From contig OZ218965.1 in assembly GCA_965112735.1 (NCBI GenBank), forward strand, positions 124,001 through 188,000: DNA of 64,000 bases. The letters run 5' to 3'. A program made the position numbers and the translations under genes. The notes below the pieces were generated by a model, which ran no database searches, was not told the DNA's origin, and was given only the letters and a program-made list of their open reading frames with translations. This stretch comes from Phaeosaccion multiseriatum (taxonomy: Eukaryota; Protista; Ochrophyta, other classes). Below are positions 33,296 through 64,000 of the stretch, piece after piece (within the stretch, counting starts at the first letter, position 1; every line of letters starts with the position of its first letter).

Positions 33296-41561
<8,266 letters not shown>

Positions 41562-41759
41562 GCGATCAGAGCCAAAGGGCCAACGTCAGGGCCAGGCTCG
41601 TGCTCAAGGTCGGGGTCGGGGTCAGGGTCAGGGTCAGGGTCAGGGTCAGGGTCAGGGGCAGGCTCAGGAGACACTCGGTGTGTTGCTGCGGCGCTTCTGC
41701 GGCTTTGGCCTCGGACCCTCACAAGAGCCTTGCGCACGACGATGGCAGTTGGTGATACA

Positions 41760-41985
41760 GCAGCAGCAGCAGCAGTTGGTGATACAGCAGCTGCAGCAGC
41801 AGTAGCAGCAGGTGGTGATACAACAGAAGCAGCAAGGGCCTGAACACGACGATGGCGGTCCTTATGCTCTCCAGCATGTGCAGAATACAAAATAGCGCTA
41901 CCGCTCACTCGCTTGGTGAACAGAGCGGCGGAAGACGCGAGAGACTCGAGAGGGGAGGGGGGCTTGCCTGTCCGTCTTACACAGT
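41760..41985 (+). repeat. Left direct repeat (ArgRS 3' flank) bounding the ROCO-TIR island
   Basis: Near-identical to 51218-51445. The core aatagcgctaccgctcactcgcttg...cttgcctgtccgtct also occurs at 57588 and 60209. Confidence 0.9.
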
Positions 41986-42118
41986 GGGGGACTGTGGAGT
42001 AGGCCACTCGTTCATGCCCAATCGGAAACCCGAGGCACCGTTTCAATATACTTTACTCTCGTTCGGTCCATAAAAAGCTTTGGCGCTTCTCTCGCTTCTC
42101 TCCCTCTCTATCTGAGGG

Positions 42119-45100
42119 TTACGACTTAGAATGTATCGTCGTCAATACCCCTTCCACCTCGTTGGCCACTCTCTTGGCGAAAGCAAACAGATCTTCTTGC
42201 CGGTCATCGCGGAGACCTGTGTTTTTATCCACACGCCCCAGCAGGTCTTTCGCAAGCTCATCCGCTGTCTTGAACTTGTCCTTCTCAAGCCAACCCCAAT
42301 CCCCTCCCTTCCCTTTGCTCCACTCCTCCCATGTCTCCTTCACGCCGGGATTGTTGTCTTCTAATTTGCCTGTGTCCCAGCATTCCTCAACCGTCAGCCC
42401 GAAGAATAGCGGCACCAGCGCTGCTCCCCCCTTCTCCGCCCTGTCCATGAAGATTTGCATCTCCTCAAGAGGCCACTCTCGGCACACAAAGTCTGGGCTC
42501 AGCACCACCACGCCAATCGGGGCGGTACGGGCAACGTGGAGCATCTTGTGCTCTGCGCGGTCTCCTGCCTCCAGGCTTCTCTCGTCCAAGAAAGTCGGAA
42601 TTCCTCTCTGCCACAGACATCTGTGAAGCAGATACACAATGCCCCGCTTCTCCGGCCCGGCGTGGCTCAAGAAGACTTGGTACCCCTTACCGTCGCTCAT
42701 TTCAATAGTCTCGACGTTGGGAAGCCCGTCTCGCGCGTTCTGCAGGGATTCCTTTGAGACAAGAGAGGGACAAGAGGAATTCGTCGGCATCAGAACACAA
42801 AGGTTTGCCCGGAGAGCAAAGTCGTCAACACAGACCTACTGAGCCTCGTACCTGGTATTTCTCGAAACCTTTCACACAAGTCCGGAGTGTAACGAAAGCC
42901 TCCCCTTCAAACTTGTCGCACAAAGTCTTCCACTCGCCTCTAAAGCAATCCGTGGCCAGAGTCGGCGGCGCCCACCGGGGGCTCAAGACGGGTGTAGCGA
43001 TCAGCCGCTCGACATCATATTCAGACAGCAGGCCCCGCTCGTTTGTGTGTGCATCAGCTTTCCGCGATGGATCCAGCACACACCCGAATTGCTGAAGGTC
43101 TCCCTGTTTCCGTCCCAAAACACACAGGTTATGATGTATGTGAGCCGCACGCAAGCTGAGAGCAACACTTACCGGCACGAGAGAAGCCTCGACAATTGTT
43201 AATTAAACAAGCAAGGTGTGTACAACCAACAACCAACATCCCCCCCTCCTCTCTCTTACCTCACGGAGCGGCCCCCACTCTTCTTTCAGGGGATCCTTGG
43301 CCACGTACACGGCTGTCCACGGGCACTTGTGGGAGGAGAGATGGTGGACCGTGTGCCGGAGCAGCATGCCCATCGCAACGGTCGGGAAAGAGTCGCACTT
43401 GGTGGGTGCAGTGTTGACGACGTGCAAAAAAAAACGAGTATAAGCAAAACTTGGAGAATCAGAGTGACGGCACGGTGAGTACATCAGGCCACGCATATGA
43501 CGCCCGTTCCTCTTCCTCACCTGCTTCTCCTCTTCTTCCCACTGACCAGCCACCTTCAGGTACAAGCGTTGCTCCGTCCAGTCATAGCTGACGAAGGCCA
43601 TGTACGCCTGTTGGGCATCGACGAACAACGCCCCTTGCCTCCAGCCAACCGCCACCTCACCGAGTCCCTTGGTGGAGAGAGTAGACACCAGCCTGGCAAT
43701 GGTCCCGGGGGGAGGGGGCCGCTCCAGCTGGAGGTACACCTGCTTCAAGTAACCCCCTACCTTCATCTCCTGGCTGATCGCATCTGCCGCATTCTTTAAT
43801 GCCTGCGCTCGCTCGTTCGAGCTGTCCATCGCATCTGGCATGCGGAGGGAGACCACAAATTGGAGCTCTTGCTCCTTGGCACGAGTGCCACCACCATTGA
43901 CCCCTTCCCCCCCTCCCGGGGTATTGTCGTGCTCAGCCTTCTCAAAAATGATGCCCAGGTCCACCAACCTTCCCAGCAGAGCCTTCACGTGTTGTTGGTC
44001 GAAAGTCCTTCCCCCGTCCCCCCCGTGACGAAGAAGAACAGCGTTCCACACGGATCCGGCAAAACCAATCGTCAGCACCCCATCCTTCTTGAGTTTGTTG
44101 GCAGCATTCCTGTCAAGTTCAAGAGCAGAAGAGCCGTCTGGTTGCGTCTCATACTGTCGCTTAGGCTTCAGTCCAAGTCTCTGCGATGATCCATTAGGCG
44201 GGGGGCAGAAATCAAGACAATACCGAGGATAAGACAGGTTGTGGCAAACGAAAGAAAGTGTGCAGCAGGTGGTGGAACATGTGAGACGGAGGGCGTATCA
44301 TCTTTACACTCTTGCCGCGTTTCATCCTTTTGTATCTTTCTTTCCCCTCCCTCCCACGCACCAGCCGCACACACACACCTTGCTGCGACCCAGTCGCACT
44401 TCAACACCGTCGGTAACGATGTCACCGGCCGGAGTCAGGAGCGGACTGATCAACTTGGAAAACAAGGCCGCCTCTGTAAGAACAACGGCTGCACCAGTCT
44501 TCACGTCTCCAGCCACCACAAGCCTTCCGTCCCTTTCCCTGCAGGGAGGGGGCACGATGAGTGTTACAATGAGTGAGAAACGAACAGGGCAAACCCCCTG
44601 GATACGTCCTCTTCTCCCTCTGCCTAAGGGATAACCGTGCCCATATTTCGAATCATATTCAGTCCAAGCAACAGCCAACCTTGGGAGTATCAACCGTGCC
44701 CCAGCCAAGCGCACTTAATTCCCACTCACTCACCACTCACTCACCACTCACTCGCCCCGAGCGCGGTATTCACTTACATCATTGTCACCGCGCACGTGAG
44801 CATCACATCACACAGGGGCTGCTCGGCTCGGCCCTGCTGCTCCTCCTCCCAGGTCTTTTTCACTTCGCCCATTGTCAGGAAGACGTGCTCCTTCGCCAAG
44901 TCGCCCAGCAGGGCCACTGCTTTCTCGAGAATAGGACCCACGACGTAGGTCTGAGCCAGGTCCTGCAACGCCCGTGTCAGAGCCATTAACTGCTGCTCCC
45001 GCCCTCCCTTCTTCTCGCAGCTCGTCATGAACGGCCTTTCATCCAGCACGAGTGATCGTCCCCCTTGCAGTTTGCCTTGTAAATCGGCGTGAATTTGGGC

Positions 45101-48100
45101 CCATTGCGCCTCCAAATCTCCTTCCCCCCGCCCCTCCCTGACCCTGTCGCATTTATTGGCTACTAAGAGCACAGGGGACTCCGAAGCGCCGTGCTGGAGC
45201 ATGTCCATTAAGGGCTCCAGCTGCTCCCCTTCCCAATCGTCGGGCGGACTCCAAACCAGCAGGTAGGCCGCTCCTTCCGTGAGAAACATGTTGCTCAAGG
45301 CGTGATAGTCTTGCTGACCACCGCAGTCAAAGAAGCGCAACGTCACCCCCTTAAGATCGCAGCTCTTGATGTCCACACCGACCGTCGACGGCTTCTCTTC
45401 TTTCCCCGTTGCTGTGGGCCGCCCTGCTACGATGCTAAGCATCAAACTGACACAAGCAAGGGACGAAGCGTCGGGGGGGGGGAGGGATGTTGGAAGCTAA
45501 TCAAGAGCAGTGGGTAATAACGAGCCGTATGTATCTTAGTATTTCTCCCCTCCTCTCTCCTGCCCTCGACCTCCTCTGTCGCCCATCGTAGTCAGCTAGA
45601 CAGGACAATGTGACGAAGAGGGCATACTGTACCTGGTCTTGCCTACTGTTGTGGGCCCTAAGAGCATGACCTTGAGGCTCATTACTTCCCTTCGACCCTT
45701 GCGCAAGTCTTGGAAGTACTTTTGCGCCATGACCCATCCTTGCTCTAACACCCCAACTGGCGGGTACTGCAGCGGGTTATCTCTCACGTAAAGGCGGCGA
45801 ATCCAGCGACCCTCGTCCGGGCAAAATTTGAGTATCCAATCTTCACTCGTGTCCGTAGCAAAGCCTGCAGGCAAGGGCACGACGCGAGTAGAGCGGCGGA
45901 GGATGGGCGGTGGTCTTTAAAGGCGGTAGGGGCTTATTTCCCGTCACCACGGAGCAGGACCACTCAGAATTGGCTCTCATCGAAAATCTCGCCACGTTCC
46001 CTACCCAAGTATCAAGTGGAAGGGACGCGAGCGGGCATGCTACCACTCACCAGTGAGCTTGTTGTTGTTGAGGTTCAAATTCGCAAGCTTGCGCAGACTT
46101 CCAAGCTCCCTTGGAATAATCCCTGCGGATGGGAGGAAAGTTCTTTGGTCAAACTCATATCAAGTGAAAGGGACGCGAACGGACCACTCGCCAGTGAGCT
46201 GATTGTTGTTGAGGTACAGTCCCGTAAGGTTCTGAAGACCTCCAAGCTCGGGCGGAGGGAAGTTTTTTGTCATACGACTTTCAAGCGAAAGGGGCGCGAA
46301 CGGTTGTGCGTACCACTCACCAGTGAGCGAATTTTGGCTGAGGGACAGTTTCTCAAGGTTCTGAAGACCTCCAAGCTCGGGTGGAATACTCCCTGCAATG
46401 GGAGGAAAGGTCAGCCATACTCATATCAAATGAAAGGGGTTCGCGTACGAGCCACTCACCATTGAGCTTATTGTAGCTGAGTTGCAGCATCTCAAGGTTC
46501 TGAAGACCTCCAAGCTCGGGTGGAATGCTCCCTGCAATGGGAGGAAAGAGTTCTTTGGTCATACTCATATCAAGTGAAAGGGACGCGAACGGGTGTGCGT
46601 ACCACTCACCAGTGAGCTGATTGTTGTTGAGGGACAGTCTCTCAAGGTTCTGAAGACCTCCAAGCTCGGGTGGAATACTCCCTGCGGATGGGTGGAAAGT
46701 TCTTTGGTCATACTCATATCAAGTCAAGGGGACGCGAACGGGTGTGCGTACCGCCTACCTTCTAGATTGTTCTCCTTGAGCGATAGTTCTCGAAGGTGTG
46801 AAAGTTGGTCAAGCTGCGGCGGAATGCTCCCTGAGATGTGGGGGAAATTCTTCAGCCATACTAATATCAAGTCAAGGAGACGCGAGCGGGTTCGCGTACC
46901 ACTTACCGGTGAGCTTATTGCGGGAGAGGCCCAATTGCTCAAGGTTCTCCAGACTTCCAAGCTCGGATGGAATGCTCCCTGCGGATGGGACAAACTTTGT
47001 TTGGTCACAATCATCTCAAGCGAAAGTGACGCGAACGGGTACGCATACCACTTACCAGTGAGCTTGTTGTGGGAGAGGCCCAATTGCTCAAGCTTCTCCA
47101 GACTTCCAAGCTCTGGTGGAATGTTCTCTGCGGAGCGGAGGACAGTTCTTCGGTCATACTCATATCAAGTGAAAGGGACGCGACCGGGTGTGCGTACCAC
47201 TCACCAGTGAGCTTGTTGTTGCGGAGGCCCAAAACCTCAAGCTTCTCCAGATGTCCAAGCTCGGGTGGAATGCTCCCTGCGGATGGGAGGGAAGTTCTTT
47301 GGTCATACGACTACCAAGCGAAAGGGAATACTCCACGTGGAGTGAGAGAGGGAGTCATACGACTACCAAGCGAAAGGGCCGCGAACGGGTTCGCACACCA
47401 CTTACCAGTGAGCTTGTTGTGGGAGAGGCCCAAAACCTCAAGCTTCGCCAGACGTCCAAGCTCGGGTGGAATGATCCCTGCGGATGGGAGGGAAGTTCTT
47501 TGGTCATACTCATATCAAGTGAAAGGGACGCGAACGGGTGCGCGTACAACGTACCAGTGAGCTTGTTGTAGGAGAGGATCAAAACCTCAAGCTTCTTCAG
47601 ACTTTCAAGCTCCATTGGAATGCTCCCTGCGGAGCGGAGGGAAGTTCTTCGTCACACGCTTATCAAGCGAGAGGGACGCGAACGGGTTCGCGTACCACCT
47701 ACCGCTGAGCTGGTTGGTCCACAGGTTGAGCACCGTCAGGTTCTCAAGACTTCCAAGCTCTGGTGGGATGCTCCCTGCGGATGGGAGGAGAGTTCTATTG
47801 TCACACTAATTCCAAGTCAGAGGGACGCGAACGGGGTGCGCGTACCACCTACCTTCTAGATTGTTCGCGTTGAGCGAGAGATGTCGAAGCTCTGCTTGCT
47901 TCCCCAACTCCTTGGGAATGTTCCCTGCGAAGCGGAGGAAGGTTCTCTGGTCACACTAATACCAAATCAAAGGGACGCGAGCGGGTGTGCGTCCCACTTA
48001 CCAGTGAGCTTGTTGTCGGAGAGGACCAAAACCTCAAGCTTCTTCAGACTTTTAAGCTCCCTTGGAATACTCCCTGCGGAGCGTAGGGAAGTTCTTCGTC

Positions 48101-49678
48101 ATACACGACTATCAAGCGAAAGGGACGCGGACGGGTTCGCGTACCACTCACCAGTGAGCTCGTTGTGGGAGAGGCCCAATTGCGCAAGCTTCTCCAGACT
48201 TCCAAGCTTCCTTGGAATGCTCCCTGCGAAGCGGAGGGAAGTTCTTTGGTCATACTCATACTAAGTGAAAGGGACGCGACCGGGTGTGCGCACCACTTAC
48301 CAGTGAGCTTGTTGTGGGAGAGGCTCAAACTCTCAAGCTTCTTCAGACGTCCAAGCTCGGGTGGAATGCTCCCTGCGGATGGGAGGAAAGTTCTGTGGTC
48401 ATACTAATATCAAGTGAAAGGGACGCGAACGGGTGTGCGTACCACTCACCAGTGAGCTCATTGTCAAAGAGGCTCAGAACCTGAAGGTTCTTCAGATCTC
48501 CAAGCGCGGGCGGAATATTCCCTGCGGAGCGGAGGAAAGTTCTTGGTCATACTCACATCAAGTGAAGGGGACGCGAACGGGTACGCGTACCACTCACCAG
48601 TGAGCTTGTTGTCCCTCAGTGTGAGCCACGTCAAGTTGGTCAGATCTCCCAACTCCTTGGGAAGGTTCCCTGTGGATGGAAGGAGAGCTCTTTGGTCATA
48701 CTAATATCAAGTCAAGAGGACGCGAACGGGTTCGCGTACCACCTACCTTCTAGATTGTTCCGATCGAGCCGTAGTTCTTGAAGGTTTGAAAGCTTGCCAA
48801 GTTGCGGAGGAATACTCCCTGAGATGTGGGGAAAGCTCTTCAGCCATACTAATATCAAGTCAAGCCAAGGGGACGCGAACGGTATGCGTACCACTTACCG
48901 CTGAGCTGATTGCCGCCGAGTTTCAGCAGCGTAAGGATCTGCAGACTTCCGAGCTCCTCGGGAATGCCCCCTGCGTATGGGAGGAGAGTTCTTTTGGTCA
49001 CACTAGTATCAAATGAAAGGGGGGAGAACGGTTGCGCGGACCACTTACCAGTCAGCTTGTTGTCGGAGAGGCCCAATTTCTCAAGCTTCTCTAGACTTCC
49101 AAGCTCGGGTGGAATGCTCCCTGCGGATGGGATGAAAGTTCTTCAGACATATAATGTCAAGTCAAGAGGACGCGAACGGGTGCTCGTGCCACTCATCAGT
49201 GAGCTGATTGTTGTTGAGGGACAGTCTCTCGTGACCTTCAAGCTCTGGTGGAATCCTCCCTGCGGAGCGGGGGGAGCTCTTTGGTACACGAAGTGTAAGG
49301 GACGCGAACGAGTCGCTGGACTACCACGTCATGCCCCTGCCTCACACTCCTCTTGCCCCTCTTTGCTTCGTCCTTCCCTAATATTCTAGACCCATCACAT
49401 GAAGGAAAGAGAGAGAGAGAACTTTACCCCCCCCCTTCTGAATACGACGCATTCTTCAGGACGTAAGGCACAACAACCATCATCACGTCTCTCCTACCTT
49501 CGAGGCCGTTGCTTCCGAGGTCAAGCTCCACCACATAGTCATTTTCCAGGCTCACTCCGAACCAGTTCTCCAAAGATGCGTCCGCGTTCCATCCCGCCTT
49601 GTTAGACCAAGCGGGTCCGCTCGTCGCGTGAAAGACGTCTGTGAGTATTCTACGCTGATCCTCGAGGACACTAGACAT
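42119..49678 (-). CDS. LRR-ROC-COR-TIR (ROCO GTPase with C-terminal TIR domain)
   Basis: Exon 1 (49678-49498) is an LRR N-cap (QRRILTDVFHATSGPAWSNKAGW...LENWFGV...VVELDLGSNGLEG), followed by 20 intact 72-nt LRR exons. ROC motifs: GPTTVGKT|S, STVGVDI, DCGGQ, VLLVANKCD, TSC. COR-like exons 44538-44379, 44180-43521, 43397-43260 and 43103-42852. TIR exon 42751-42119 (YQVFLSHAG...TFLDERSL...VVVLSPDFVCREWPLEEM). All junctions GT-AG and in frame. Confidence 0.92.
46192..46256 (-). pseudogene. Broken LRR cassette (acceptor and exon 5' end deleted, donor GC)
   Basis: LRR sequence ...PELGGLQNLTGLYLNNNQLTG is joined directly to intron sequence without the cag acceptor. The donor reads GCGAG. Confidence 0.8.
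49197..49259 (-). pseudogene. Broken LRR cassette (63 nt, donor GT>AT)
   Basis: GRIPPELEGHERLSLNNNQLTG carries a 9-nt deletion, and the donor reads ATGAGT. Confidence 0.8.
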
Positions 49679-51217
49679 CGTAACCTTTGTAACACGCAAA
49701 CACTGATAAAAGCTCGTCCTGTTCTCAGTGTTTAGTCTGGTTCAATCTGCAAAACGGCGTTAGGATACGTCAGCATTAAAAGTGAGCGAGCTTTGAATCC
49801 ATGAAGTTCACAAATGGATGTGACCGTGACCCAGGAAAAAAATTGTCTTCCGTAGCAAGACCAAGCACATGGGTGGGGTGCTACACTCCCTGAGCATTGT
49901 AAGGGGATAGACAGATAGCAGCATTATTGCTAACAAGGCTGGTGCGAACGGGATTACTCTCGGGGAGGAAAAAAGGAAGGAGGCGGGCCACGTTTACGAA
50001 GCCGGCATTGGAGGAGCACATTGCGCGGCTATTGGCAGAGGAGACGCGGATAGCGCAGGAGAATCTTGCCAGCGCCCTCAGCATGCACAAGGGAAGCACT
50101 GCTGCCACCCCTCCAAGCTTGCAGCTGGCACAGGGCATTGAGCCCGCATCTGGCTGGGAGCAGCCAGAGGCGTCGGCGAACGAGAAGGCAGCGGCGCAGG
50201 CCAAGCAAGCTCCCGGATAGGGCATATTCCACGTTTCGGGCGCTGCCTGCGGGGCGGCCTGGCTGCCCCCTCCCCTGCGCTGAGGCAGAGAGTCGGAAGG
50301 TCTGGGCTACGGGGAAGGCGGCAGTGGCAAAGGGGGGGGGATAGAGGTCTAGTGGCGGACCCTGTGGGCGACAGCGGCCGGGCCCACTTACGCGGGTGAT
50401 GCGGTCGTTGGGCGCCTTGCGAGCTGTACACCACCCCAGGTGGAGGTCTCGCTGCCCCGCATATGGACCCGGCCAGCCAGGAAAGATGAGGTGCTGGAGG
50501 ATAAGCGCGTCACCGGCCACGTACGAGAGCAAGTCGTCGCTTGCTGGCGCCAGGAACGGCGTTCAGCAGTAATGGTGGACGCAGCCAGAGGTGAGATGAG
50601 AGGGTGAAAGGGTTTCTCGAAGGGTCAGCTCGCAGCTGCAAGGCAGAAGGCAGTGGCCGGGGAGAACCACCAGAGCGTCGATGAGCACGCTGCCCTGGCT
50701 GATTGAGAATAGAAGGATCAAAGACTTTCTGCTCGAGAGGGCGATTGTAGTGCATCATGCTTTTCTGGACGAGCAGGCCTGCAGTGAGATGTGGCCACAC
50801 CCCTTGGGGGAAGTTGAGGAGCAGAAGGGGAAGCGAAATGGAGGGTCATCAGCGATATGACGGCAGGGCGCTGCGGCAGCGAGTCGGGGTGCCTGGAGGT
50901 GCTGCTCGACCTCCTATCTCTCTCTTCCCCCTTCAGGCTTACAAGGATGCAGCGGGGGGGAGTGGAAGGTGATGCACCGCAAAGGGGGCAGTACAGGTCC
51001 TCAGCAGCGTGGTGGCGAAGGCCAGAGATGCCGATATCAATGTCGATGATGCCGATATCAATGTCGATGATGCCGACATCAATGTCGCAGTGGCGAGGGC
51101 CAGAGACAGGCCTGGACCCGAGCGACTTCGTACTGCACACGCTCGCCCTCTCCGTAGCTATCGGCGCAGCGACAACGCTGGCGGCCAGGGTACTCTCGGA
51201 TGCGCAGGTATACGACA

Positions 51218-51445
51218 ACAGCAGCAGCAGCAGCAGTTGGTGATACAGCAGCAGTAGCAGCAGGTGGTGATACAACAGAAGCAGCAAGGGCCTGAACACG
51301 ACGATGGCGGTCCTCATGCTCTCCAGCATGTGCAGAATAAGAATAGCGCTACCGCTCACTCGCTTGCTGAACAGAGCGGCGGAAGACGCGAGAGACTCGA
51401 GACGGGATGGGAAGGGAGGGGGGCTTGCCTGTCCGTCTAACACAG
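51218..51445 (+). repeat. Right direct repeat bounding the ROCO-TIR island
   Basis: Near-identical to 41760-41985. Confidence 0.9.
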
Positions 51446-52537
51446 AAGGAGAAGGAGTAGCTCAGTTTTAATGTGTTCATTCTCTTTGATTTTTGATTTA
51501 AGATCCTTCATACAAGGTGGATACTGTACCTGTTCGCTTATCTACACATCCCCCACCCCCTTCGCCTGAGCCCGCGCGACCAAGGCCGCCGTCCGCGCCC
51601 CTCGGCTCCGCCATGCCCATATGCCTCTGCTCAAATATGCCCATATGCCTCTGCTCAAATATGCCCATACGCCTCTCCTCTTCCCTTCCCATCCTCCTTT
51701 TTACTATTGACTATTGGGCCCTTACTTGGGCCGGGCCTCGTCCGAGCTGGTGGGTTGACCTGAGGGCGTTTGTTGGCTTACTGGGGTGGAGGGCGTTTGT
51801 TGGCTTACTGGAGTGGGCGTTCGCTGACCTGCCGGCCGTTCCTCCTTTACGGGCGGCAGGCACTGCAGCTGATGACCACCCCGGCCCATACACCTCCCGC
51901 TGGACTGCCTGCCTATATGCCTGTCGCCGCTGGGGACGACACTCTCGTGCTTCCCCTGCTGCGGCGTCTCCAAGCGCTCTCCGCTCGGAGGGAGGCTCTC
52001 GTCGTTGTCCATTGAGAGGTGCTGTATGCCCAACTGCTGTACCACCCACTGCTTCGTCTCCCCCCCGTACGGCCCCACTGTTGCCCGCCTCCCTTCCTGC
52101 GTCGGTCCCCCGGTGGGTGCCCCTGCCCCTGACCCATGCAATGCCCTTGCCCCTCCTGCCGCCCCCACCCCCATCAGCTCCTCTACGGAAGGACTGCTCG
52201 CAAGAAGAGCGAGGGTGTCGTGACTGCGGCTGGGAGAGGGGGAGCTGCTGATGGACTTTCTTTGCCTCAGTCTGAGCTTCCTCCTCACCACCCCCCCACC
52301 CCCCCCCCCAGCTCCCTCCTCTGGAGGGCTTTGCGCTGTGAGGGGTCCGCTGAGTGCGAGCTCGAGAAGACCCTTCTCGTGCAACGCGAAACAGGAGCTG
52401 CAGCCGCCCAAACAGCGCCCGTGGCTGAAGAGCTGGGGCACTGGACAAGAGAGGGGGGAGGAGGGAGAGGGAGCGTCAGGGGGAGGGTTTCGACAACACA
52501 CACCGCACACCCTCTCCTTTCATCGGGCCTCGGGGAG

Positions 52538-52650
52538 CACCGATGGCCCATATGCCTTAGCACTGATGGCCCATACGACTTAGCACTGATGGCCCATATG
52601 CCTTAGCACTGATGGCCCATACGACTTAGCACTGATGGCCCATATGACTT
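52538..52650. repeat. 23-bp tandem repeat cttagcactgatggcccatatgc
   Basis: About 5 copies here; the paralogous array at 61321-61500 has about 8. Confidence 0.9.
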
Positions 52651-53834
52651 ACCTGTGGCGATGCCAGTCATTTTGGTGAGCTCGAGCTGCAGGGGGACAC
52701 CCCCCCCGGGGAGCTCGTCGAACTGCCAAAAGAGAGCGGAAGAGAGAAGGAGAGAGAGAGTGACAAACAGAGAGGCAGACAGAGAGGGATAGAGAGACAC
52801 ATCAGTAAGGCAGAAAGAGAGAGAACTATTCAGGCTTGTGAGCGAAGACGATGGCACCCCACGGCCGTACGAGGGGCGTTGGTGGTCCAGACAGTTGTCA
52901 TCTGTTGCATCGATCCCAAGGGCTCTCTCTCTCTTCATTGTCGCTCCTTATCTCCCCATTCGCTTGTCTCCCTGCCCCTCCCGAGAAGCTCTCACCTGCA
53001 CCACAGTGAACTCCACCTTAAGGTTGTGCAACAAGTCCAACAAGCGGTTGCTGCGACAGGGAGGGGGGGCGTCGAGAGGAGTAGGGGTGGGCGTAAGGGT
53101 GGTGGGCACAGATAGTAAGGAGGACTTGAGGAGGACGAGGTCAGGAGGCAGGCGAGAGGAAGACACCCTCTCCACAAGGAGTGCCGAATGGCCAACAACG
53201 AGGGCACAAACCTGAAGGAGCAGTAGCTCTTGCCGAACACCACGACGTCGTTCTTGGCCACTTGCTCCTTCAGCCACCACCGCCATGTGGCCGGGTCCTG
53301 ACACCAACCAGCGTTTTCACAGAGCAGAAACAAGTGTATGGGCATGAGAGAGCTGACACCAGCACCACCAAGAGGACTTTGGTCAACCTCCCTCCCGAGC
53401 AGCACGTGCTGAGAACGTTCCTCGAGGACATCACCCTCCCCTGAGAATGTTCTGCGAGGACACCCCCCTCCCCCACAACACCCTGGTGCTGACTGTGGTG
53501 GACTGTGGTGATGACTGTGGGCATCCCTTCGTAGCTACTGGGGGCCATGGCCAGGCAGTCATTAGCTTATTGCGCTGTACCACTCCTCACCTGATCGAGC
53601 TCCGCGAGTGTGGCAAATCGGTCCGAAATCTCCTCCCAGCTGCCCCTCTCGTTCATCACCCACTGCCGCGAGAGGAAGACAGTGGACACACATAAGACAC
53701 GGGCCGTGAGGAGAAGGAGAGAGAAAGAGAGAGAAAGGGAGGGGGGGGGTGGGGGAGGCTCTGGACAGAGAGAGAGTACACTACATCAGAGCAGAGCAGA
53801 GCACGCATGACGCACGGTACTGAGGAACTCAGGG

Positions 53835-54462
53835 ACTGACTGACTGACAGACTGATTGACTGACTGACTGACTGACTGACTGACTGACTGACTGACTGAC
53901 TGACTGACTGACTGACTGACTGACTAACTGACTAACTGACTGACTGACTGACTCACTGACTCACTGACCGACTGACTGACTGACTGACTGACTGACTGAC
54001 TGACTGACTTCACTGACTGACTGACTTCACTGACTGACTGACTGACTGACTGACTGACTTCACTGATTGACTGACTGACTGACTGACTGACTGACTGACT
54101 GACTGATACTGACTGACTGACTGAGGGCCTGACTGACTGACTGACTGACTGACTGAGTGATACTGACTGACTTACTGACTGACTGAGGGCCTGACTGACT
54201 GACAGACTGGCTGACTGACTGACTGACTGACTGACTGAGGGCCTGACTGAGGGCCTGACGGACTGACTGACTGACTGACTGACTGACTGATACTGACTGA
54301 CTGACTCACTTAGGGCCTTGACTGACTGACTGACTGACTGACTGACTGACTGACTGACTGACTGACTGTGACTGACTGACTGACTGACTGACTGAGAGAC
54401 TTGACTGACTGACTGATTGATACTGACTGACTGACTGACGGACTGACTGACTGACTGACTTC

Positions 54463-54494
<32 letters not shown>

Positions 54495-54705
54495 CCTGCC
54501 TGCCTGCCTGACAGACTGACAGACTGACAGACTGACTGAGTGACTGACCGACCGACTGACTGACTGACTGACTGACTGACTGACAGACTGAGGGCCTGAC
54601 TGACTGACTGACTGACTGACTGACTGACTGACTGACTGGCTGCCTGACTCACTGACTCACTGACTGACTGCCTGACTGACTGACTGACTGACTGACTGAC
54701 TGACT

Positions 54706-54739
<34 letters not shown>

Positions 54740-54740
54740 G
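53835..54740. repeat. (TGAC)n intronic microsatellite
   Basis: About 900 bp here, versus about 90 bp at the paralogous site 62640-62730. Confidence 0.95.
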
Positions 54741-55501
54741 AGCCTTGACGGACCCCTCTCGCGGCGCCCCCCCCCGCACCTGTCTGCCTGCGCTCTGCCG
54801 TGTGTCGCTGCCCGGCTGGCTGCTCTGGTCCGTACTCTGGTCTGGGCTCTCGCTCTCCATGTACTTGACGAGCTTGGGGCCCGAGGTGGACGTGTCCTTA
54901 TTCTCCGAGTTCTCGATCCACGCCACGAAGTCCACCTGCGCATGCACACACACGCGCACACACACACACACGCACACACGCATACACACAAACGCACACA
55001 CACATACACACACGCACACACGCACACACACACGTGCCCGCGGGCGCGGCATTCGGCAGTGGAGCGACAGAGACATACGTCATGAAACGCCATGGCAGGA
55101 AGGGTCATGGCGGTAAGAGCTTTGGCGGGAAGGGCTTTGGCGGGAAGGGCTCACGCTCCCTCTAGTCCTTATCACTCCTCGGTGGCCCAACCTGTGTACG
55201 CCCAACCTGTGTATGCCCAAACAACCCCACCCGTGCATGGCCCTGCCCGCCCCGCTGCTGCCGACAGTTTCACTCACCTTGTGCATGAGCTTCTCTACGG
55301 TGAGGGGCACCTTCTGCAGCGAGTCCTCGATCTCCTCCTCGGGCACGAAACGGCCCGTCTGCTCGCCGCGCTCCTTGGCCCTTCGAAACACACACTCGCG
55401 GTCGGCGAACACGTAGAGAATGGCGATGCGGTAGTGGGGGCGCTTCAAGCGGATCTGTCGGAACACGATCTGCGTGGGCACAAACACACACACGTACATA
55501 C

Positions 55502-55703
55502 TCGGCCCCTGACATGCTTCTGAGGCGACCCTGCTTCCTGCTTCTGGCCGGCGCCAGCCGGCCAGGCAGGTTCCAGGTTCTGGGGGAAAGCCATGTAATA
55601 AGGCAATGATGAGGGCCAAGGCTGGTTCCTGCTTCTGGCCGGCGCCAGCCGGCCTGCTTCCTGCTTCTGGGCTGGCCTGTCTCAGAAGCATGTCAGGGGC
55701 CGA
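55502..55703. mobile_element. MITE (202 bp, 23-bp TIRs, 6-bp TSD ACATAC)
   Basis: TCGGCCCCTGACATGCTTCTGAG (55502-55524) and its exact reverse complement (55681-55703). ACATAC at 55496-55501 and 55704-55709. Absent from the paralogous intron near 63445. Confidence 0.92.
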
Positions 55704-57186
55704 ACATACAAACGCTCTGTCAGAAGGGGCCGATGCGCTTCTGTCTGCAGACGGACGGCTCTCTCTCTCGCTCTCTTTCTCTCCCTCTCTGGCTCTCTTT
55801 CTCTCTCTTGCTCTCGTTCTCTCTCTCTCTCTTTCTCTGTCTGTAGCTATGTCCGTCTTTCCCTCCCCCTGCGGCGGGGAGAGTGCGCAGCCCTCATCCC
55901 TGGCGACCCCACACACGCACGCACGCACGCACCTCATACCACTCTGCATCCCTTAGGCTGCCATCGACCCACACGTTCTTCTGCCTCTCCATAGCAACCT
56001 CCTGCGCAGACAAGGGGGGGGGGCACGCACGAGGCAGCGGGTAGAGAGCGGCAATACCAATGTCAAGCAATGGCAATGTCAATGTCAAGCAATGGCAATG
56101 TCAATGTCAAGCAATGGCAATGTCACGGGGTCAAGCTTTTGGGGTCAGCGGGTACAGTGCAAGGTGTCAGGACAGCGGGTACAGTGCAAGGTGTCGGGAC
56201 AGCGGGCACAGTGCAGGGTGTCAGGACAGGGGGGGCGTGTCACTGACTGCGCTACTGACTGCGCTGGTGACCAACTTATTGACAGATTGACTCAATGACT
56301 GACTGACAGACTCGAGAACTGACTGACTTACTGGCCGACCGACCCACCGACCGACCGACCGACCCACCGACCGACCGACCGACCGACCGACTGACTGACT
56401 GACTGACTGACTGACTGACTGACTGACTGACTGACTGACTGACTGACTGACTGACTGACTGACTGACTGACTGACTGACCTGCGCAATTTCGATCATGAA
56501 GCCGCTCTCGAGCCTAGTCCTGTTGCCGGCCTCGTTGGGGCACGTCTTGAGGTAAAGCTTCCACTCGGGAAACGACATCTTGAGCATGTCGGGGTCCAGC
56601 TGAGGACAGGAGGGGGGGAAGGCAGGGGCGTTGGGGGGTCAGGGAGGGAGGATGGCAGTGGATGGCAAGGGGCAGGAGCAGAACAAACAAGAGGGCGCCC
56701 CATCGCCCGGAGAGGGAGGGATGGCAGTGGATGGCAGTGGACGTGAGTGAGTACGTGCGTGGGTGGGTGAGTGAGTGAGTGTGTGAGGGATTGAGTGAGT
56801 CAGTCAGTCAGCGAAAGAGTGAGGGAGTAAGTGAGGCTGTGAGTGAGTGAGCCAGTGAGTCAGTCAGCGAAAGAGTGAGGGAGTAAGTGAGGCAGTGAGT
56901 GAGTGAGTGAGTGAGCCAGTGAGTCAGTAAGTGGGCCAGTGAGTCAGTAAGTGAGCCAGTGAGTCAGTTACTAGTGAGTGGGTGAGTGGGGGGGGGGGGG
57001 GAGATGTGAGTGAGTGAGTGAATTAAATGTGACACGATGTCTCTGACGCTGTATCACCACTGCTGCTTTGTGCATGGCCCTGTCCCGTCGGTGATACAAA
57101 ACGGGCACCTCCCACCCACCGTCCTGAAACCCCCTACCCGCTGTCCTGACACCCCCAACCCCCACGCTCCCGTGTTGGTGCTACAT

Positions 57187-57276
57187 AACGGGCGCCTCCT
57201 GCTGTGCCAAGCCACGAAGCGAGCCATGGGCACATGCTTCGAGCTGCTCGGCATCAAGCCCCTGGAGCGTATCTAA
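57187..57276 (+). pseudogene. Duplicated ArgRS terminal exon (pseudo-exon)
   Basis: Copy of NGRLLLCQATKRAMGTCFELLGIKPLERI*. The acceptor gatacag is mutated to gctacat. Confidence 0.88.
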
Positions 57277-57897
57277 GCGATCAGGGCCAAAGGGCCAACG
57301 TCAGGGCCAGGCTCATGCTCAGGGTCAGGGTCAGGGTCAAGGTCAGGGTCAAGGTCAGGGGCAGGGTCAGGGGCAGGCTTAGAAGACACTCGGTGTGTTG
57401 CTGCGGCGCTTCTGCGGCTTTGGCCTCGGACGCCTCACAAGAGCCTTGGGCACGACGATGGCAGTTGGTGATACAGCAGCAGCAGTTGGTGATACAACAA
57501 CAACAGCAGCAGCAGTTGGTGATACAACAGAAGCAGCAAGGGCCTGAACACGACGATGGCGGTCCTCATGCTCTCCAGCATGTGCAGAATAGCGCTACCG
57601 CTCACTCGCTTGCCGAACAGAGCGGCGGAAGACGCGAGAGGGGAGCGGAGGGGAGGGGAGGGGGGCTTGCCTGTCCGTCTATCACAGAATGAGTGATTTA
57701 AGATCCTTCATACAGGGTGGATACCCTCAACAGGATATGTTAAGGGGGGACTGTGGAGTAGGCCACTCGTTCATGCCCAATCGGAAACCCGAGGCACCGT
57801 TTCAATATATTTTACTCTCGTTCTGTCCGTGAAAAGCTTTGGCGCCTCTCTCTCTCTCTCTGACTAAGGGTGGCTGGGGACTTGCAATCGGTGAGGG

Positions 57898-58780
57898 TTA
57901 CGACTTGGAATGTAACGTCGTCAATGCCCTTGCCACCTCGTTGGCCGCTCTTTTGGCGAAGGCAAACAGATCCTCTTGCCGGTCATCGCGGAGACCCGTG
58001 TGTGCACCCACACGCCCCAGCAGGTCCTTCGCAAGCTCATCCGCTGCCTTGAACTTGTCCTTCTCAAGCCAACCCCAATCCCCTCCCTCCCCTTTGCTCC
58101 ACTCTCCCCATGTCTTCTTCACGCAGGGATGGTTGTCTTCTAATTTGCCCGTGTCCCAGCATTCCTCAACCGTCAGCCTGAAGAATAACGGCACCAGCGC
58201 TGCTTCCCCCTTCTCCGCCCTGTCCATGAAGATGTGCATCTCCTGAAGAGGCCACTCTCGGCACACAAAAGACGGACTCAGCACGACCACGCCAATCGGG
58301 GCGGTGTGGGCAGCGTGGAGCATCTTGCGCTCGGCGCGGTCTCCTGCCTCCAGGCTTTTCTCGTCCAAGAAAGTCGAAATTCCTCTCTGCCACAGACATC
58401 TATGCAGCAGAGACACAATGCCCCGCTTCTCCGTCCCGGCGTGGCACAGGAAGACTTGGTACCTCTTATCGTCCCTCGTTTCAATGTCGTAAAGCCCGTC
58501 TCGCGCCTTCTGCAGGCATTCCTTTGAGAGAAGAGAGGGACAAGAGGAATTCGTCGGCATCAGAACACGGATTTCCCCCCCCCCCCTTTTTAACGTTTAT
58601 CTCGCTCCCTCGTACCTGGTACTTGTTGAACAGGTCCACACAAATCTTTCGTGCAACGTTGGCATCATCTCTAAATTTGCCATAGACCCTTGAGAGAAGC
58701 CCCCACAACTGGTTTTTAATCGTGCGGAAAATGTCATAAAAAAAAGTCCAAGAGGAGGCCGAAAGGCCCATCCGTTCCAT
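57898..58780 (-). CDS. Stand-alone TIR-domain protein (two exons, ~262 aa) or truncated ROCO paralogue
   Basis: Exon 58780-58616 (MERMGLSASSWTFFYDIFRTIKNQLWGLLSRVYGKF...FNKYQ|GT) splices in frame to an intact TIR exon 58521-57898 (YQVFLCHAG...WPLQEM), paralogous to 42751-42119. Confidence 0.7.
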
Positions 58781-59074: not shown

Positions 59075-60535
59075 AGGCGAACCTTTAGCACGGCTGTTCT
59101 TCTGTTGTAGACTGTCTGGCACGCGAGCAACTTTGCACACGTTCGGATTAGGTACCAATGGAGGGCATTGCTGCTCATCTCGACTGGCATCTGGCTTAGG
59201 TCGGGCGGTGGAGGCAATGCTGTGTGGGCGGATTCCAACGGCAATCTATGGCATTCTGCCCACGGCGTCTTCTTTCGGCTGTAGGCTCCGCGTCTGCGCA
59301 CTCGTATCGTCCCTGCTGGCCGCGTTGGGGATGGGGTTGTTCAGATGCACCGGTGGGGCTGCGCAACCAGTCCCACGCCTTGTGGGAACTGGCGGTTCGG
59401 ACAAAATGACGGAGCTGGAGGGGAAGGACGTTGTCTGGCATTTTCTCCTGGACACACAGCGTAGGCAAGCCCCTGGCGGAAGAGAGGAGTGCAGTGATCA
59501 GTAGACATAGGGAGAAGCAGACGGCGCAAAGTGGGCAGGAGAACGACGGAGGGGGGGGCAAGGGAGGAGGACGCGGGGCAGCACCGACAGCGACGGCGTG
59601 GCCCCTTTGGGGGGCGGTGCCAACGCGCCACCCAGCGCCCTTGGCGCCGATTGCGGCTCGAACCTCGGAAGCATCGCGCACGGCACGGCCAATGGCAAGA
59701 GGCGCCACAGCACCGGGAGCGGCAGCAGGAGCTGCTCCGTCCAACCGCCGCAGGGAGGGAGGGGGGCAGTGCTGCCAGAGGGCCCATGGAGTGGCATCAT
59801 GGCGTTTTTTCGTGACTCCGGCTCTCTCTGCTGGTAGTGGGGGGCAGCCCCACGCAGCCGGAGGCGCACGTGACACCCGTCAACTGCGTGCTCGTCGACG
59901 TCACCGCGTGGGCGCAGAGTAAGGGTATAGGTTTATGTCCGTCTTGAAGCACTTTTTCACTTTTTCCACCCGCCGGATGGAAAGGGCGCCCTGTTTACCC
60001 TTGCTGACGGGTCTGTGGGCGGTGCTGGCCTCATTGCAGATGGAGGGTCGGCCCCGGAGCCACCTGCCAAGCAGCCGAAGACGGGTGGCGCGCAGAGGAC
60101 AGATGCCCCCCTCCCATGCCGTGGGGTACTGGCAATCGAGTTCGGTCCTTCCGTCATCAAGCGGGCTAGTGAGAGGCTTACTGAGATTTCCAGGGGGGCC
60201 GTAAGCGAAATAGCGCTACCGCTCACTCGCTTGCCGAGCAGAGCGGCGGAAGACGCGAGAGACTCGAGACAGGGGGGCTTGCCTGTCCGTCTTAGAAGGA
60301 GTAGTTCAGTTTTATTGTGTTCATTCTCTTTGATTTTTGATTTAAGATCCTTCATACAAGGTGGATACCTGTTCGCATATCTACACATCCCCCACCCCCT
60401 TCGCCTAAGCCCGCGCGACCAAGGCCGCCGTCCGCGCCCCTCGGCTCCGCCATGCCCATATGCCTCTGCTCTAATGTGCCCATACGCCTCTGCTCGTGAC
60501 TTCCCCCCCCCTTTTTCCTATTGACTATTGGGCCC

Positions 60536-63500
60536 TTACTTGGGCCGGGCCTCGTCCGAGCTGGTGGGTTGGCCTGAGGGCGTTTGTTGGCTTACTGGGG
60601 TGGGCGTTCGCTGACCTGCCGGCCGTTCCTCCTTTACGGGCGGCAGGCACTGCAGCTGATGACCACCCCGGCCCATACACCTCCCGCTGGACTGCCTGCC
60701 TATATGCCTGTCGCCGCTGGGGACGACACTCTCGTGCTTCCCCTGCTGCGGCGTCTCCAAGCGCTCCCCGCTCGGAAGGAGGCTCTCGTCGTTGTCCATT
60801 GAGAGGTGCTGTATGCCCAACTGCTGTACCACCCACTGCTTCGTCTCCCCCCCGTACGGCCCCACTGTTGCCCGCCTCCCTTCCTGCGTCGGTCCCCCGG
60901 TGGGTGCCCCTGCCCCTGACCCATGCAATGCCCTTGCCCCTCCTGCCGCCCCCACCCCCATCAGCGCCTCTACGGAAGGACTGCTCGCAAGAAGAGCGAG
61001 GTTCTCGTGACTGCGGCTTGGAGAGGGGGAGCTGCTGATGGACTTCCTTTGCCTCAGTCTGAGCTTCCTCCTCACCACCCCCCCACCCCCCCCAGCTCCC
61101 TCCTGTGGAGGGCTTTGCGCTGTGAGGGGTCCGCTGAGTGCGAGCTCGAGAAGACCCTTCTCGTGCAACGCGAAACAGGAGCTGCAGCCCCCCAAACAGC
61201 GCCCGTGGCTGAAGAGCTGGGGCACTGGACAAGAGAGGGGGGAGGAGGGAGAGGGGGCGTCAGGGGGAGGGTTTCGATACCACAAACCGCACACCCTCTC
61301 CTTTCATCGGGCCTCGGGGGGCACCGATGGCCCATATGCCTTAGCACTGATGGCCCATATGCCTTAGCACTGATGGCCCATATGACTTAGCACTGATGGC
61401 CCATATGCCTTAGCACTGATGGCCCATATGACTTAGCACTGATGGCCCATATGCCTTGGCACCGATGGCCCATATGCCTTAGCACCGATGGCCCATATGA
61501 CATACCTGTGGCGATGCCAGTCATCTTGGTGAGCTCGAGCTGCAGGGGGACACCCCCCCCGGGGAGCTCGTCGAACTGCCAAAAGAGAGAGCGGAAGAGA
61601 GAGGGAGAGAGAGAGCGACAAACACAGAGGTAGACAGAGAGGGATAGAGAGACACATGAGTAAGGCAGAAAGAGAGAGAACTATTCAGGCGTGTGAGCGA
61701 AGACGATGGCAACCCACGGCCGTACGAGGGGCGTTGGTGGTCCAGACAGTTGTTATCTGTTGCATCGATCCCAAGGGCTCTCTCTCTACATTGTCGCTCC
61801 CAATCTCCCCATTCGCTTGTCTGCCTGCCCCTCCCGAGAAGCTCTCACCTGCACCACAGTGAACTCCACCTTAAGGTTGTGCAGCAAGTCCAACAAGCGG
61901 TTGCTGCGACAAGGAGGGGGGGCGTCGAGAGGAGGGAGTGGGAGTAGGGGTGGTGGGCACAGATACTAAGGAGGACTTGAGGAGGACGAGGTCAGGAGGC
62001 AGGCGAGAGGAAAAGACCCTCTCCACAAGGAGTGCCGAATGGCCAACAACGAGGGCACAAACCTGAAGGAGCAGTAGCTCTTGCCGAACACCACGACGTC
62101 GTTCTTGGCCACTTGCTCCTTCAGCCACCACCGCCATGTGGCCGGGTCCTGACACCAACCAGCGTTTTCACAGAGCAGAAACAAGTGTATGGGCATGAGA
62201 GAGCTGACACCAGCACCACCAAGAGGACTTTGGTCAACCTCCCTCCCGAGCAGCACGTGCTGAGAACGTTCCTCGAGGACATCACCCTCCCCTGAGAATG
62301 TTCTGCGAGGACACCCCCCTCCCCCACAACACCCTGGTGCTGACTGTGGTGGACTGTGGTGGTGACTGTGGGCATCCCTTCGTAGCTACTGGGGGCCATG
62401 GCCAGACAGTCATTAGCTTATTGCGCTGTACCACTCCTCACCTGATCGAGCTCCGCGAGTGTGGCAAATCGGTCCGAAATCTCCTCCCAGCTGCCCCTCT
62501 CGTTCATCACCCACTGCCGCGAGAGGAAGACGGTGGACACACACAAGACACGGGCCGTGAGGAGGGGGAGAGAGAAAGAGAGAGAAAGGGAGGGGGGGGG
62601 GTGGGGGGGGGTTATTATGACGGTACTGAGGAACTGAGGGACTGACTGACTGACTGCCTGACTGACTGACTGACTGACTGCCTGCCTGACTGACTGCCTG
62701 CCTGACTGACTGACTGACTGATTGACTGACCCCTCTCGCGGCGCCCCCCCCCGCACCTGTCTGCCTGCGCTCTGCCGTGTGTCGCTGCCCGGCTGGCTGC
62801 TCTGGTCTGTACTCTGGTCTGGGCTCTCGCTCTCCATGTACTTGACGAGCTTGGGGCCCGAGGTGGACGTGTCCTTATTCTCCGAGTTCTCGATCCACGC
62901 CACGAAGTCCACCTGCGCATGCACACACACACACCCACACACACCCACACACACACACACACACACACGTGCCCGCGGGCGCGACATTCGGCAGTGGAGC
63001 GACAGAGACATACGTCATGAAACGCCATGGCAGGAAGGGTCATGGCGGTAAGAGCTTTGGCGGGAAGGGCTTCGGCGGGAAGGGCTCACGCTCCCCCTAG
63101 TGCTTATCACTCCTCGATGGCCCAACCTGTGTATGCCCAACCTGTGTACGCCCAACCTGTGTATGCCCAAACAACCCCACCCGTGCATGGCCCTGCCCGC
63201 CCCGCTGCTGCCGACAGTTTCACTCACCTTGTGCATGAGCTTCTCTACGGTGAGGGGCACCTTCTGCAGCGAGTCCTCGATCTCCTCCTCGGGCACGAAA
63301 CGGCCCGTCTGCTCGCCGCGCTCCTTAGCCCTTCGAAACACACACTCGCGGTCGGCGAACACGTAGAGAATGGCGATGCGGTAGTGGGGGCGCTTCAAGC
63401 GGATCTGTCGGAACACGATCTGCGCGGGCACAAATACACACACACATACACACACACAGTCAGAAGGGGCCAATGTGCTTCTGTCTGCAGATGGACGGCT

Positions 63501-64000
63501 CTCTCTATCTCTTTCTGTGTGTGTGTGTCCGTCTGTCTCTCGCCCTGCGGCGAGGTGAGTGCGCAGCCCTCATCCGTGGCGACCCCACACACGCACGCAC
63601 GCACGCACCTCATACCACTCTGCATCCCTTAGGCTGCCATCGACCCACACGTTCTTCTGCCTCTCCATGGCAACCTCCTGCGCAGACAGGGGGGGGGAGC
63701 ACGCACGAGGCAGGGGGTAGAGAGCGGCAATGTCAATGTCAATGTCAATGTCAATGTCAATGTCAATGTCAATGTCAATGGCAATGTCAATGTCAATGTC
63801 ACGGGGTCAAGCTTGGGGTCAGCGGCTACAGTGCAAGGTGTCAGGACAGGGAGGGCGTGTCACTGACTACTCACTGAGCTGGCTGACGAACCTATTGACA
63901 GGTTGAATCACTGACTGACTGACTGACTGACTGGGGAACTGGCTGACTCACTGGCCGACCGACCGACTGACTGACTGACTGACTGACTGACTGACTGACT
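60536..64000 (-). CDS. Zeta-toxin-like P-loop kinase / glutaredoxin fusion, 5' part beyond window end
   Basis: Same exon series as 51722-56001, from EVAMERQKNVWVDGSLRDAEWYE to SSDEARPK*, with no lesion noticed. Continues past 64000. Confidence 0.82.
61321..61500. repeat. 23-bp tandem repeat (paralogue of 52538-52650)
   Basis: Tandem cttagcactgatggcccatatgc units. Confidence 0.9.

Follow-up and report, generated by a model that had tools for sequence, protein, structure and literature searches.

Brown-algal ROCO proteins with leucine-rich repeats (LRRs), known from Ectocarpus and other brown algae, are candidate immune receptors (Liu et al. 2024; reportedly also Zambounis et al. 2012). The gene considered here appears to extend this type of protein, since its predicted product ends in a TIR (Toll/interleukin-1 receptor) domain. 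In the survey of Liu et al. 2024 (PMC11378527), all 111 brown-algal genes were of the LRR-ROC-COR type and had no TIR, and a few carried a peptidase or a DUF900 domain; the same paper mentions a TPR-ROCO-TIR protein in Chondrus. Bacterial proteins described by Kaur et al. 2021 in eLife (PMC8195603) combine rapidly evolving LRRs with an AP-GTPase, COR and a variable C-terminal effector, which can be a TIR, and have been read as counter-invader systems. Civiero et al. 2014 (PMC4104024) likewise name TIR as one of the domains present in ROCO proteins of Trichoplax. The present analysis concerns a stretch of 64,000 nucleotides from the ochrophyte Phaeosaccion multiseriatum (assembly GCA_965112735.1, contig OZ218965.1, positions 124,001 to 188,000), called the window below, with positions counted from its first letter. 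On the minus strand of the window, 42119–49678 apparently holds a single intact gene, whose predicted product is a cytosolic protein of some 1,450–1,500 aa with the architecture LRR-Roc-COR-TIR. This architecture is itself already known from the bacterial LRR-GTPase-COR-TIR proteins, the TPR-ROCO-TIR protein of the red alga Chondrus and the TIR-containing ROCO proteins of Trichoplax, so that the novelty implied by an earlier, sequence-only reading of this DNA is smaller than it seemed. The new part is that, in ochrophyte algae, an LRR-ROCO of the brown-alga type, with its exon cassettes, is predicted to be combined with a TIR effector. No description of an LRR-ROCO-TIR in brown or related algae was found in the literature searched.

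The gene model comprises 27 exons joined at canonical sites, from the ATG at 49678 to the stop at 42119, with GT-AG at each junction. Spliced in this way, it reads as 1,495 aa without a stop, which bears out, in sequence, the earlier claim that LRR, ROC, COR and TIR are encoded in one in-frame gene. The order in the model is LRRNT, 20 cassettes of plant-type LRRs, Roc, a divergent COR, an 84-aa linker and TIR. Exon 1 (49498–49678) contains the start codon and an LRRNT-like cap, which resembles the first exon of a Chrysoparadoxa locus that is discussed below, and no signal peptide is visible in it. The array of 20 LRR exons (46051–49120; introns mostly 76–80 nt) is followed by an exon with a pre-Roc segment and the P-loop GPTTVGKT (45633–45864), which has BLASTP similarity to the N-terminus of the Chrysoparadoxa protein P0002, and by the Roc GTPase exon, in which COR-A also starts (44778–45446). 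After an intron (44539–44777) come the COR-A exon (44379–44538), assigned by hhalign, and the main COR exon (43260–44180), which was assigned by hhalign and by AlphaFold2 (AF2) with Foldseek and is predicted to hold the C-terminal part of COR-A together with COR-B. This exon includes a possible in-frame intron of 123 nt, from 43520 to 43398. Its removal would give a protein of 1,454 aa, and without it the model is nearer to the COR-B tail of the relatives, as judged by eye from BLASTP alignments. The last two exons are the linker exon (42852–43103) and the TIR exon with the stop codon (42119–42751), separated by a 100-nt intron (42752–42851) that contains an in-frame stop. Two degenerate LRR cassettes also lie within the gene. 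The first (49197–49259; 63 nt) has AT replacing the GT donor and is located within intron 1, while the second (46192–46251) has no acceptor region and a GC donor and is located within a 198-nt intron. Both are confined to introns, and the frame is unaffected.

The gene shares with brown-algal LRR-ROCO genes the coding of each 24-aa LRR by its own symmetric 72-nt exon, hypervariability at the xxLxLxx positions, a Roc that is followed here by a probable COR, and the absence of a signal peptide; its Roc shows about 31% identity with proteins of Ectocarpus and Laminaria. In contrast to these genes, it adds a C-terminal TIR, in frame after COR; its COR is too divergent for Pfam, and its introns of about 77 nt are better conserved than the exons. 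The array at 46040–49260 has a period of about 149 bp, each period consisting of AG, 72 nt, GT and an intron of about 77 nt. All 20 LRR exons are 72 nt long, have phase 1-1 and are bordered by GT-AG, and no two of the 20 cassettes are identical in sequence. The cassettes vary chiefly at their xxLxLxx positions. The entropy is 2.3–3.1 bits at repeat positions 15, 17, 19 and 20 and approximately 0 at the Leu, Asn and Pro of the framework, and the differences per cassette pair amount to 9.07 at 13 variable positions versus 0.58 at 11 framework positions. The variable cassette array proposed from the letters alone is present, as 20 phase-symmetric exons with the greatest variation at xxLxLxx, and both marks of the brown-alga type, a symmetric 72-nt exon for each LRR and variability at xxLxLxx, were found. 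The closest cassettes are frequently 13, 7 or 6 units apart, which points to block duplication in the germline. The diversification proposed earlier, by cassette recombination or alternative splicing, is supported as far as germline duplication and reshuffling of cassettes, indicated by the spacing of the nearest cassettes, and not beyond this. Since every LRR exon has phase 1-1, skipping would keep the frame, and in-frame LRR exon skipping is structurally possible. It was also observed that the mean identity is 80.7% for inter-LRR introns and 68.6% for LRR exons, and that, within the LRR exons, conservation is lowest at codon position 3 (63.8%).

The ROC GTPase had been described as intact, and profile and motifs agree on this. 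The Roc open reading frame (ORF; 44774–45445) matches PF08477 at 4.9e-11, above the Pfam cutoff, and the G1, G3 and G4 motifs are intact (GPTTVGKT, DCGGQ and NKCD at model residues 610, 658 and 715). The NTPase matches are solely to Ras-like GTPase families (Roc, Ras and Arf), with GTP_EFTU below the threshold. No NB-ARC or NACHT NTPase of the STAND class (signal transduction ATPases with numerous domains), by which a TIR-NLR (a nucleotide-binding LRR receptor with TIR) would be recognized, was matched in the Pfam scan of the gene.

The TIR ORF (42119–42790) matches PF01582 at 4.3e-14 and PF13676 at 2.2e-12. Among solved structures in the PDB its sequence is closest to AtTIR (2.6e-13) and to AbTir, an NADase (3e-11), with 3JRN, 7UWG and 8G83 among the matches, and it is also matched by the PADLOC models PDC-S66 and ThsB. 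In the alignments with AtTIR and AbTir, the second Glu of WPLEEM (codon 42461–42463) falls on the Glu of WCLDEL and of WTNYEL, respectively, a position that we take to be that of the catalytic residue of TIR. Two features of an enzymatic TIR, the profile match and the Glu at the catalytic position, are present. The Glu on which the sequence-only reading had placed weight is kept in both TIR copies of the window, the second being a TIR-only gene upstream (TIR2; the TIR of the ROCO gene is TIR1), where it occurs as WPLQEM (codon 58240–58242).

The joining of this TIR to Roc-COR depends on the intron that separates it from the linker exon. This exon finishes with ...KYQ, in phase 0, directly before the donor GTACGAGG, and the TIR exon begins in phase 0, so that the junction is compatible. 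The acceptor has a strong context, with a pyrimidine tract of 24 nt before the AG. The DNA upstream of the two TIR copies is unalignable except for one island, which consists of the 3' end of the linker exon (~30 nt) together with the donor. This conserved island reads TACCAG followed by GTACGAGG upstream of both TIRs, and it holds a 14-nt exact match, TACCAGGTACGAGG.

Further evidence comes from another ochrophyte. A HMMER search of 1.84 billion representative proteins gave 4,331 TIR matches, and the three best were Roc-(COR)-TIR proteins of Chrysoparadoxa australica, each recorded as an 'unnamed protein product': P0001 (CAM9660036.1), P0002 (CAM9907097.1) and P0003 (CAM9880587.1). P0001 and P0002 carry Roc upstream of TIR, and P0003 carries an N-terminal region of COR length. 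P0002 is encoded by a single uninterrupted ORF of 2,388 nt with Roc, COR and TIR, and residues 1–713 of P0001 lie in one exon. As an LRRNT-like exon and 72-nt LRR exons precede P0002 on the same contig, the architecture is found in a second ochrophyte without the splice in question. The Chrysoparadoxa TIRs are the closest found (47–50% identical), and Roc is 38% identical by BLASTP. In the TIR tree, TIR1 and TIR2 stand together (SH-like approximate likelihood ratio test, SH-aLRT, 98) and are grouped with the three Chrysoparadoxa TIRs (SH-aLRT 83). The order of LRRNT, 72-nt LRR exons, Roc, COR and TIR is the same in both algae, whereas Roc-COR-TIR occupies one uninterrupted exon in Chrysoparadoxa and six exons in the window gene, and the GC content is 50% in Chrysoparadoxa and about 60% in the window. 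At the Chrysoparadoxa locus (L001, positions 55–3416 of CAXMZZ020002094.1), the annotation splits what appears to be a single gene into a 104-aa LRR gene and a 795-aa Roc-COR-TIR gene. The linker-TIR junction of the window gene is a prediction, and a fused LRR-Roc-COR-TIR gene is favoured with good confidence. The order of sensor, switch and executor that had been proposed is real at the level of DNA, and the Chrysoparadoxa relatives carry the Roc-COR-TIR fusion in one ORF.

Several observations weigh against a single, functional receptor gene of this kind, and they concern the COR region, the linker-TIR junction and the constraint on the TIR. The region 43260–44538 has no Pfam COR-A or COR-B match and no sequence match in the PDB. 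It was matched neither by a HMMER profile of the three Chrysoparadoxa COR regions nor by BLASTP with these relatives, and the ESM Atlas returned just weak winged-helix (TFIIIC) look-alikes. With hhalign, a profile of 14 COR sequences from which the query was left out gave a probability of 50% and an E of 1.6e-4, and a longer query against a 12-sequence profile gave 84% and 7e-6; COR landmarks, among them G.l...l..lW, Y.vP.lLp, PPG.l.rL and Wr.G, are lined up in the alignment. The AF2 model of the region (mean predicted local distance difference test score, pLDDT, 60) had as top Foldseek match the COR of C. tepidum Roco (3DPT, E 2.7e-6), followed by 6HLU, LRRK1 and LRRK2, and this fold match is supportive rather than independent, the AF2 alignment consisting of COR-bearing proteins chosen by the authors. 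The single-sequence model reached a pLDDT of 38. The region after Roc is likely a divergent COR that stays below the curated threshold. The COR-like region of the earlier reading is in this form supported by hhalign and the match to the 3DPT fold, without Pfam.

At the junction, the joining of 42852 to 42751 in the mRNA, like the expression of the gene, is something that we infer from genomic DNA. An ATG at 42790, inside the linker-TIR intron, opens a TIR-only ORF of 223 aa, and such an ORF is present in both copies. Over ~50 nt at the 3' end of the intron, the two copies are near-identical, with 1 difference between 42752–42800 and 58522–58570; this stretch before the TIR exons, which includes the ATG of the alternative ORF, is better conserved between them than the coding sequence of the TIR is (89%). 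A 221-nt probe on the intron was also compared with sequencing runs of one sample (S1), and all four runs listed for it (X1 and X4–X6), which are of unstated kind, each hold 0.65 of the 17 sampled words, where purely spliced RNA would be expected to hold no more than about 0.32 and exact genomic DNA close to 1.0. Over 42100–46000 the k-mer shares are 0.67–0.78, again in runs of unstated kind. Shares of 0.65–0.78 fit RNA with a retained intron as well as DNA with few differences and do not discriminate between them. The 24-mer of the spliced junction had no match in metagenome contigs of the Joint Genome Institute (JGI). Searches of protein collections with the TIR exon and with the COR exon, as well as a search for exact copies of the 223-aa ORF, recovered no protein or transcript of the organism's own genome. 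The ratio of nonsynonymous to synonymous substitution rates (dN/dS) between TIR1 and TIR2 is 0.49, at a dS of 0.17, which indicates no more than moderate constraint.

A rival reading assumes two adjacent genes, an LRR-Roc-COR gene that reads through the donor to end at ...KYQVRGSVGLC and a stop, and a separate TIR-only gene of 223 aa that starts from the ATG at 42790 and would be comparable to the TIR-only copy at 57898. The ATG-initiated TIR ORF is intact in both copies, and the boundary of the duplication is located just 8 nt upstream of this ATG. The words of the intron apparently occur in the S1 runs at a share above that of purely spliced RNA, and TIR is absent from the published brown-algal ROCO proteins (PMC11378527). 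Nevertheless, the closest TIRs, those of Chrysoparadoxa, are covalently fused to Roc-COR in single ORFs or exons, the donor and the tail of the linker exon have been kept upstream of both copies, amid DNA that cannot be aligned, and the junction is phase-compatible, with a strong acceptor context. The share of 0.65 fits DNA with few differences equally well, the runs being of unstated kind. For these reasons, two separate genes are considered unlikely.

The predicted fusion can be compared with the bacterial-type proteins as well. P0161 and P0163 contain LRR, Roc, COR-A, COR-B and TIR in the same order as the window gene, with a canonical Pfam COR and a ThsB-like TIR. They are encoded by uninterrupted ORFs in public assemblies, the published family being prokaryotic, whereas the window gene is rich in introns. 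BLASTP of the spliced model against P0161 and P0163 gave no match in Roc, COR or TIR, and their TIRs are placed elsewhere in the tree; for this reason, the fusion in the window is probably independent of the prokaryotic LRR-GTPase-COR-TIR proteins or very old. Other combinations also exist, such as Ank-Roc-COR-TIR (P0102) and Sel1-Roc-TIR (P0138). As other Roc-linked TIRs fall outside the clade of the window gene in the TIR tree, fusions of Roc and TIR probably arose more than once. The Chondrus crispus protein XP_005712860.1 (P0151/P0084), the TPR-ROCO-TIR protein mentioned by Liu et al., resembles the window gene in having a eukaryotic Roc with a C-terminal TIR, which is 39% identical. However, its sensor consists of Sel1/TPR repeats instead of LRR cassettes, and its TIR lies outside the clade of the window and Chrysoparadoxa TIRs.

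Like the predicted product of the window gene, the plant TIR-NLRs ROQ1, RPP1 and RUN1 combine a sensor made of repeats with a nucleotide switch and a TIR that has the catalytic Glu, and the window TIR matches the TIRs of ROQ1, RPV1, RUN1 and L6 at 1.7e-8 to 7e-5. The switch of the window gene is a Ras-like Roc-COR GTPase and not a STAND NB-ARC ATPase, and its TIR is C-terminal and not N-terminal. The gene is an analogue of the TIR-NLRs and not a member of this group.

One intact LRR-Roc-COR-TIR gene that works by sensor, switch and TIR is, taken as a whole, a fairly likely explanation of the locus. In such a receptor, a ligand would be bound by the hypervariable concave face of the LRR solenoid, and its binding would alter the nucleotide or dimer state of Roc-COR. 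This change could lead to self-association that draws the TIR domains together, and the TIR, with its Glu at the catalytic position, might then cleave NAD+ or make a nucleotide signal, as bacterial and plant TIRs do. The diversity of the repertoire would arise from germline duplication and reshuffling of blocks of cassettes. For the bacterial proteins, an equivalent logic of rapidly evolving LRR sensor, GTPase switch and C-terminal effector has already been put forward (PMC8195603). We infer ligand sensing, TIR enzyme activity and an immune role by analogy with these systems. The fused TIR might instead serve as a scaffold or adaptor that recruits other TIRs by homotypic contacts, for example the TIR-only paralogue, without being an NADase, and the pathway would then not necessarily be immune. 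Animal TIRs serve as adaptors, and a TIR-only paralogue is indeed linked to the ROCO gene. Yet the Glu at the catalytic position is retained in both copies, and the best matches of the TIR are enzymatic or of the defence type (AbTir, AtTIR, PDC-S66 and ThsB), so that a purely adaptor function appears improbable. It is very improbable that the gene is a decaying or silent paralogue, a recently duplicated receptor copy that is unexpressed or non-functional in a repeat-rich, rearranging region, since the two degenerate cassettes, the dN/dS of 0.49 between the TIR copies and the microsatellites and nested duplications in the flanks, which would fit such a copy, are set against 27 of 27 open exons with canonical splice sites, intact GTPase and TIR motifs and an unbroken frame around cassettes that lie within introns.

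The stand-alone TIR gene that had been reported about 9 kb upstream is present as a paralogue on the minus strand at 57898–58780. The 3' end of its ORF is located 8.2 kb upstream of the start codon of the ROCO gene, and TIR2 is 82% identical to TIR1 at the amino-acid level. Its model has an ATG at 58780, a 55-aa exon (58616–58780), a 94-nt intron (58522–58615) and a TIR exon of 207 aa (57898–58521), which gives 262 aa in total, and the ORF 57898–58560 matches Pfam TIR at 1.5e-14. Since it has kept the tail of the linker exon with the donor, and since it nests in the ROCO-TIR clade, the TIR-only gene looks like a truncated duplicate of the ROCO-TIR gene. Its designation as a linked TIR-only partner finds no support as far as a dedicated partnership is concerned. 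A membrane anchor on this gene was considered and rejected, the maximum Kyte-Doolittle mean over 19 aa being 0.35 and no hydrophobic N-terminal segment being present. A tblastn search of the rest of the window with the gene model found TIR2 and no other ROCO or TIR remnants.

The surroundings of both genes are repetitive. A block that consists of the TIR exon and its 3' flank (40962–42798) is 85–90% identical to 56746–58568. A repeat of about 230 bp, here called repeat R (51218–51445), has further copies at 41757–41984 and 57474–57693 and a partial one at 60208–60294, and it flanks both the ROCO-TIR and the TIR-only gene on each side. The unit of flank, repeat, TIR gene, repeat and neighbouring gene forms a tandem duplication whose period is about 15.7 kb, an arrangement that suggests insertion or recombination at repeat R, followed by segmental duplication. 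The segments 51342–56175 and 60209–63849 are duplicates with an identity of 91–97% that carry the neighbouring gene on the minus strand, and this gene has a weak Zeta_toxin-like match at 55083–55949 (E 0.004, below the Pfam cutoff). Arrays with periods of 8–12 nt, whose ORFs read as repeats of the SVSQ type, flank the duplicated units at 40385–41236, 53719–54700 and 56221–57018. Just past the duplicated flank, 39250–40342 contains proline-rich and CT-rich low-complexity ORFs on both strands, probably simple-sequence DNA and not a gene.

A more far-reaching possibility, quite improbable as it stands, is that this algal lineage has LRR-ROCO-TIR proteins as its main intracellular receptors for pathogens, that skipping or choice of LRR exons gives repertoires specific for cells or stages, and that the TIR-only paralogue is a helper that amplifies a nucleotide signal made by TIR. 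If true, the plant system of TIR-NLR (TNL), TIR-only and EDS1 proteins would have a GTPase-based counterpart that evolved independently in stramenopiles. The predicted gene is of interest without this extension. Brown-alga-type LRR-ROCO proteins have been proposed as immune receptors mainly from the variation of their LRR exons, and they had no output domain of known immune chemistry. A C-terminal TIR with Glu at the catalytic position, present on an LRR-ROCO here and in Chrysoparadoxa, would give the immune hypothesis an output that can be assayed, either NAD+ consumption or a nucleotide signal. As a eukaryotic, intron-rich counterpart of the bacterial LRR-GTPase-COR-TIR proteins, the predicted gene may also inform how often receptors composed of a sensor, a switch and a TIR have been assembled independently.

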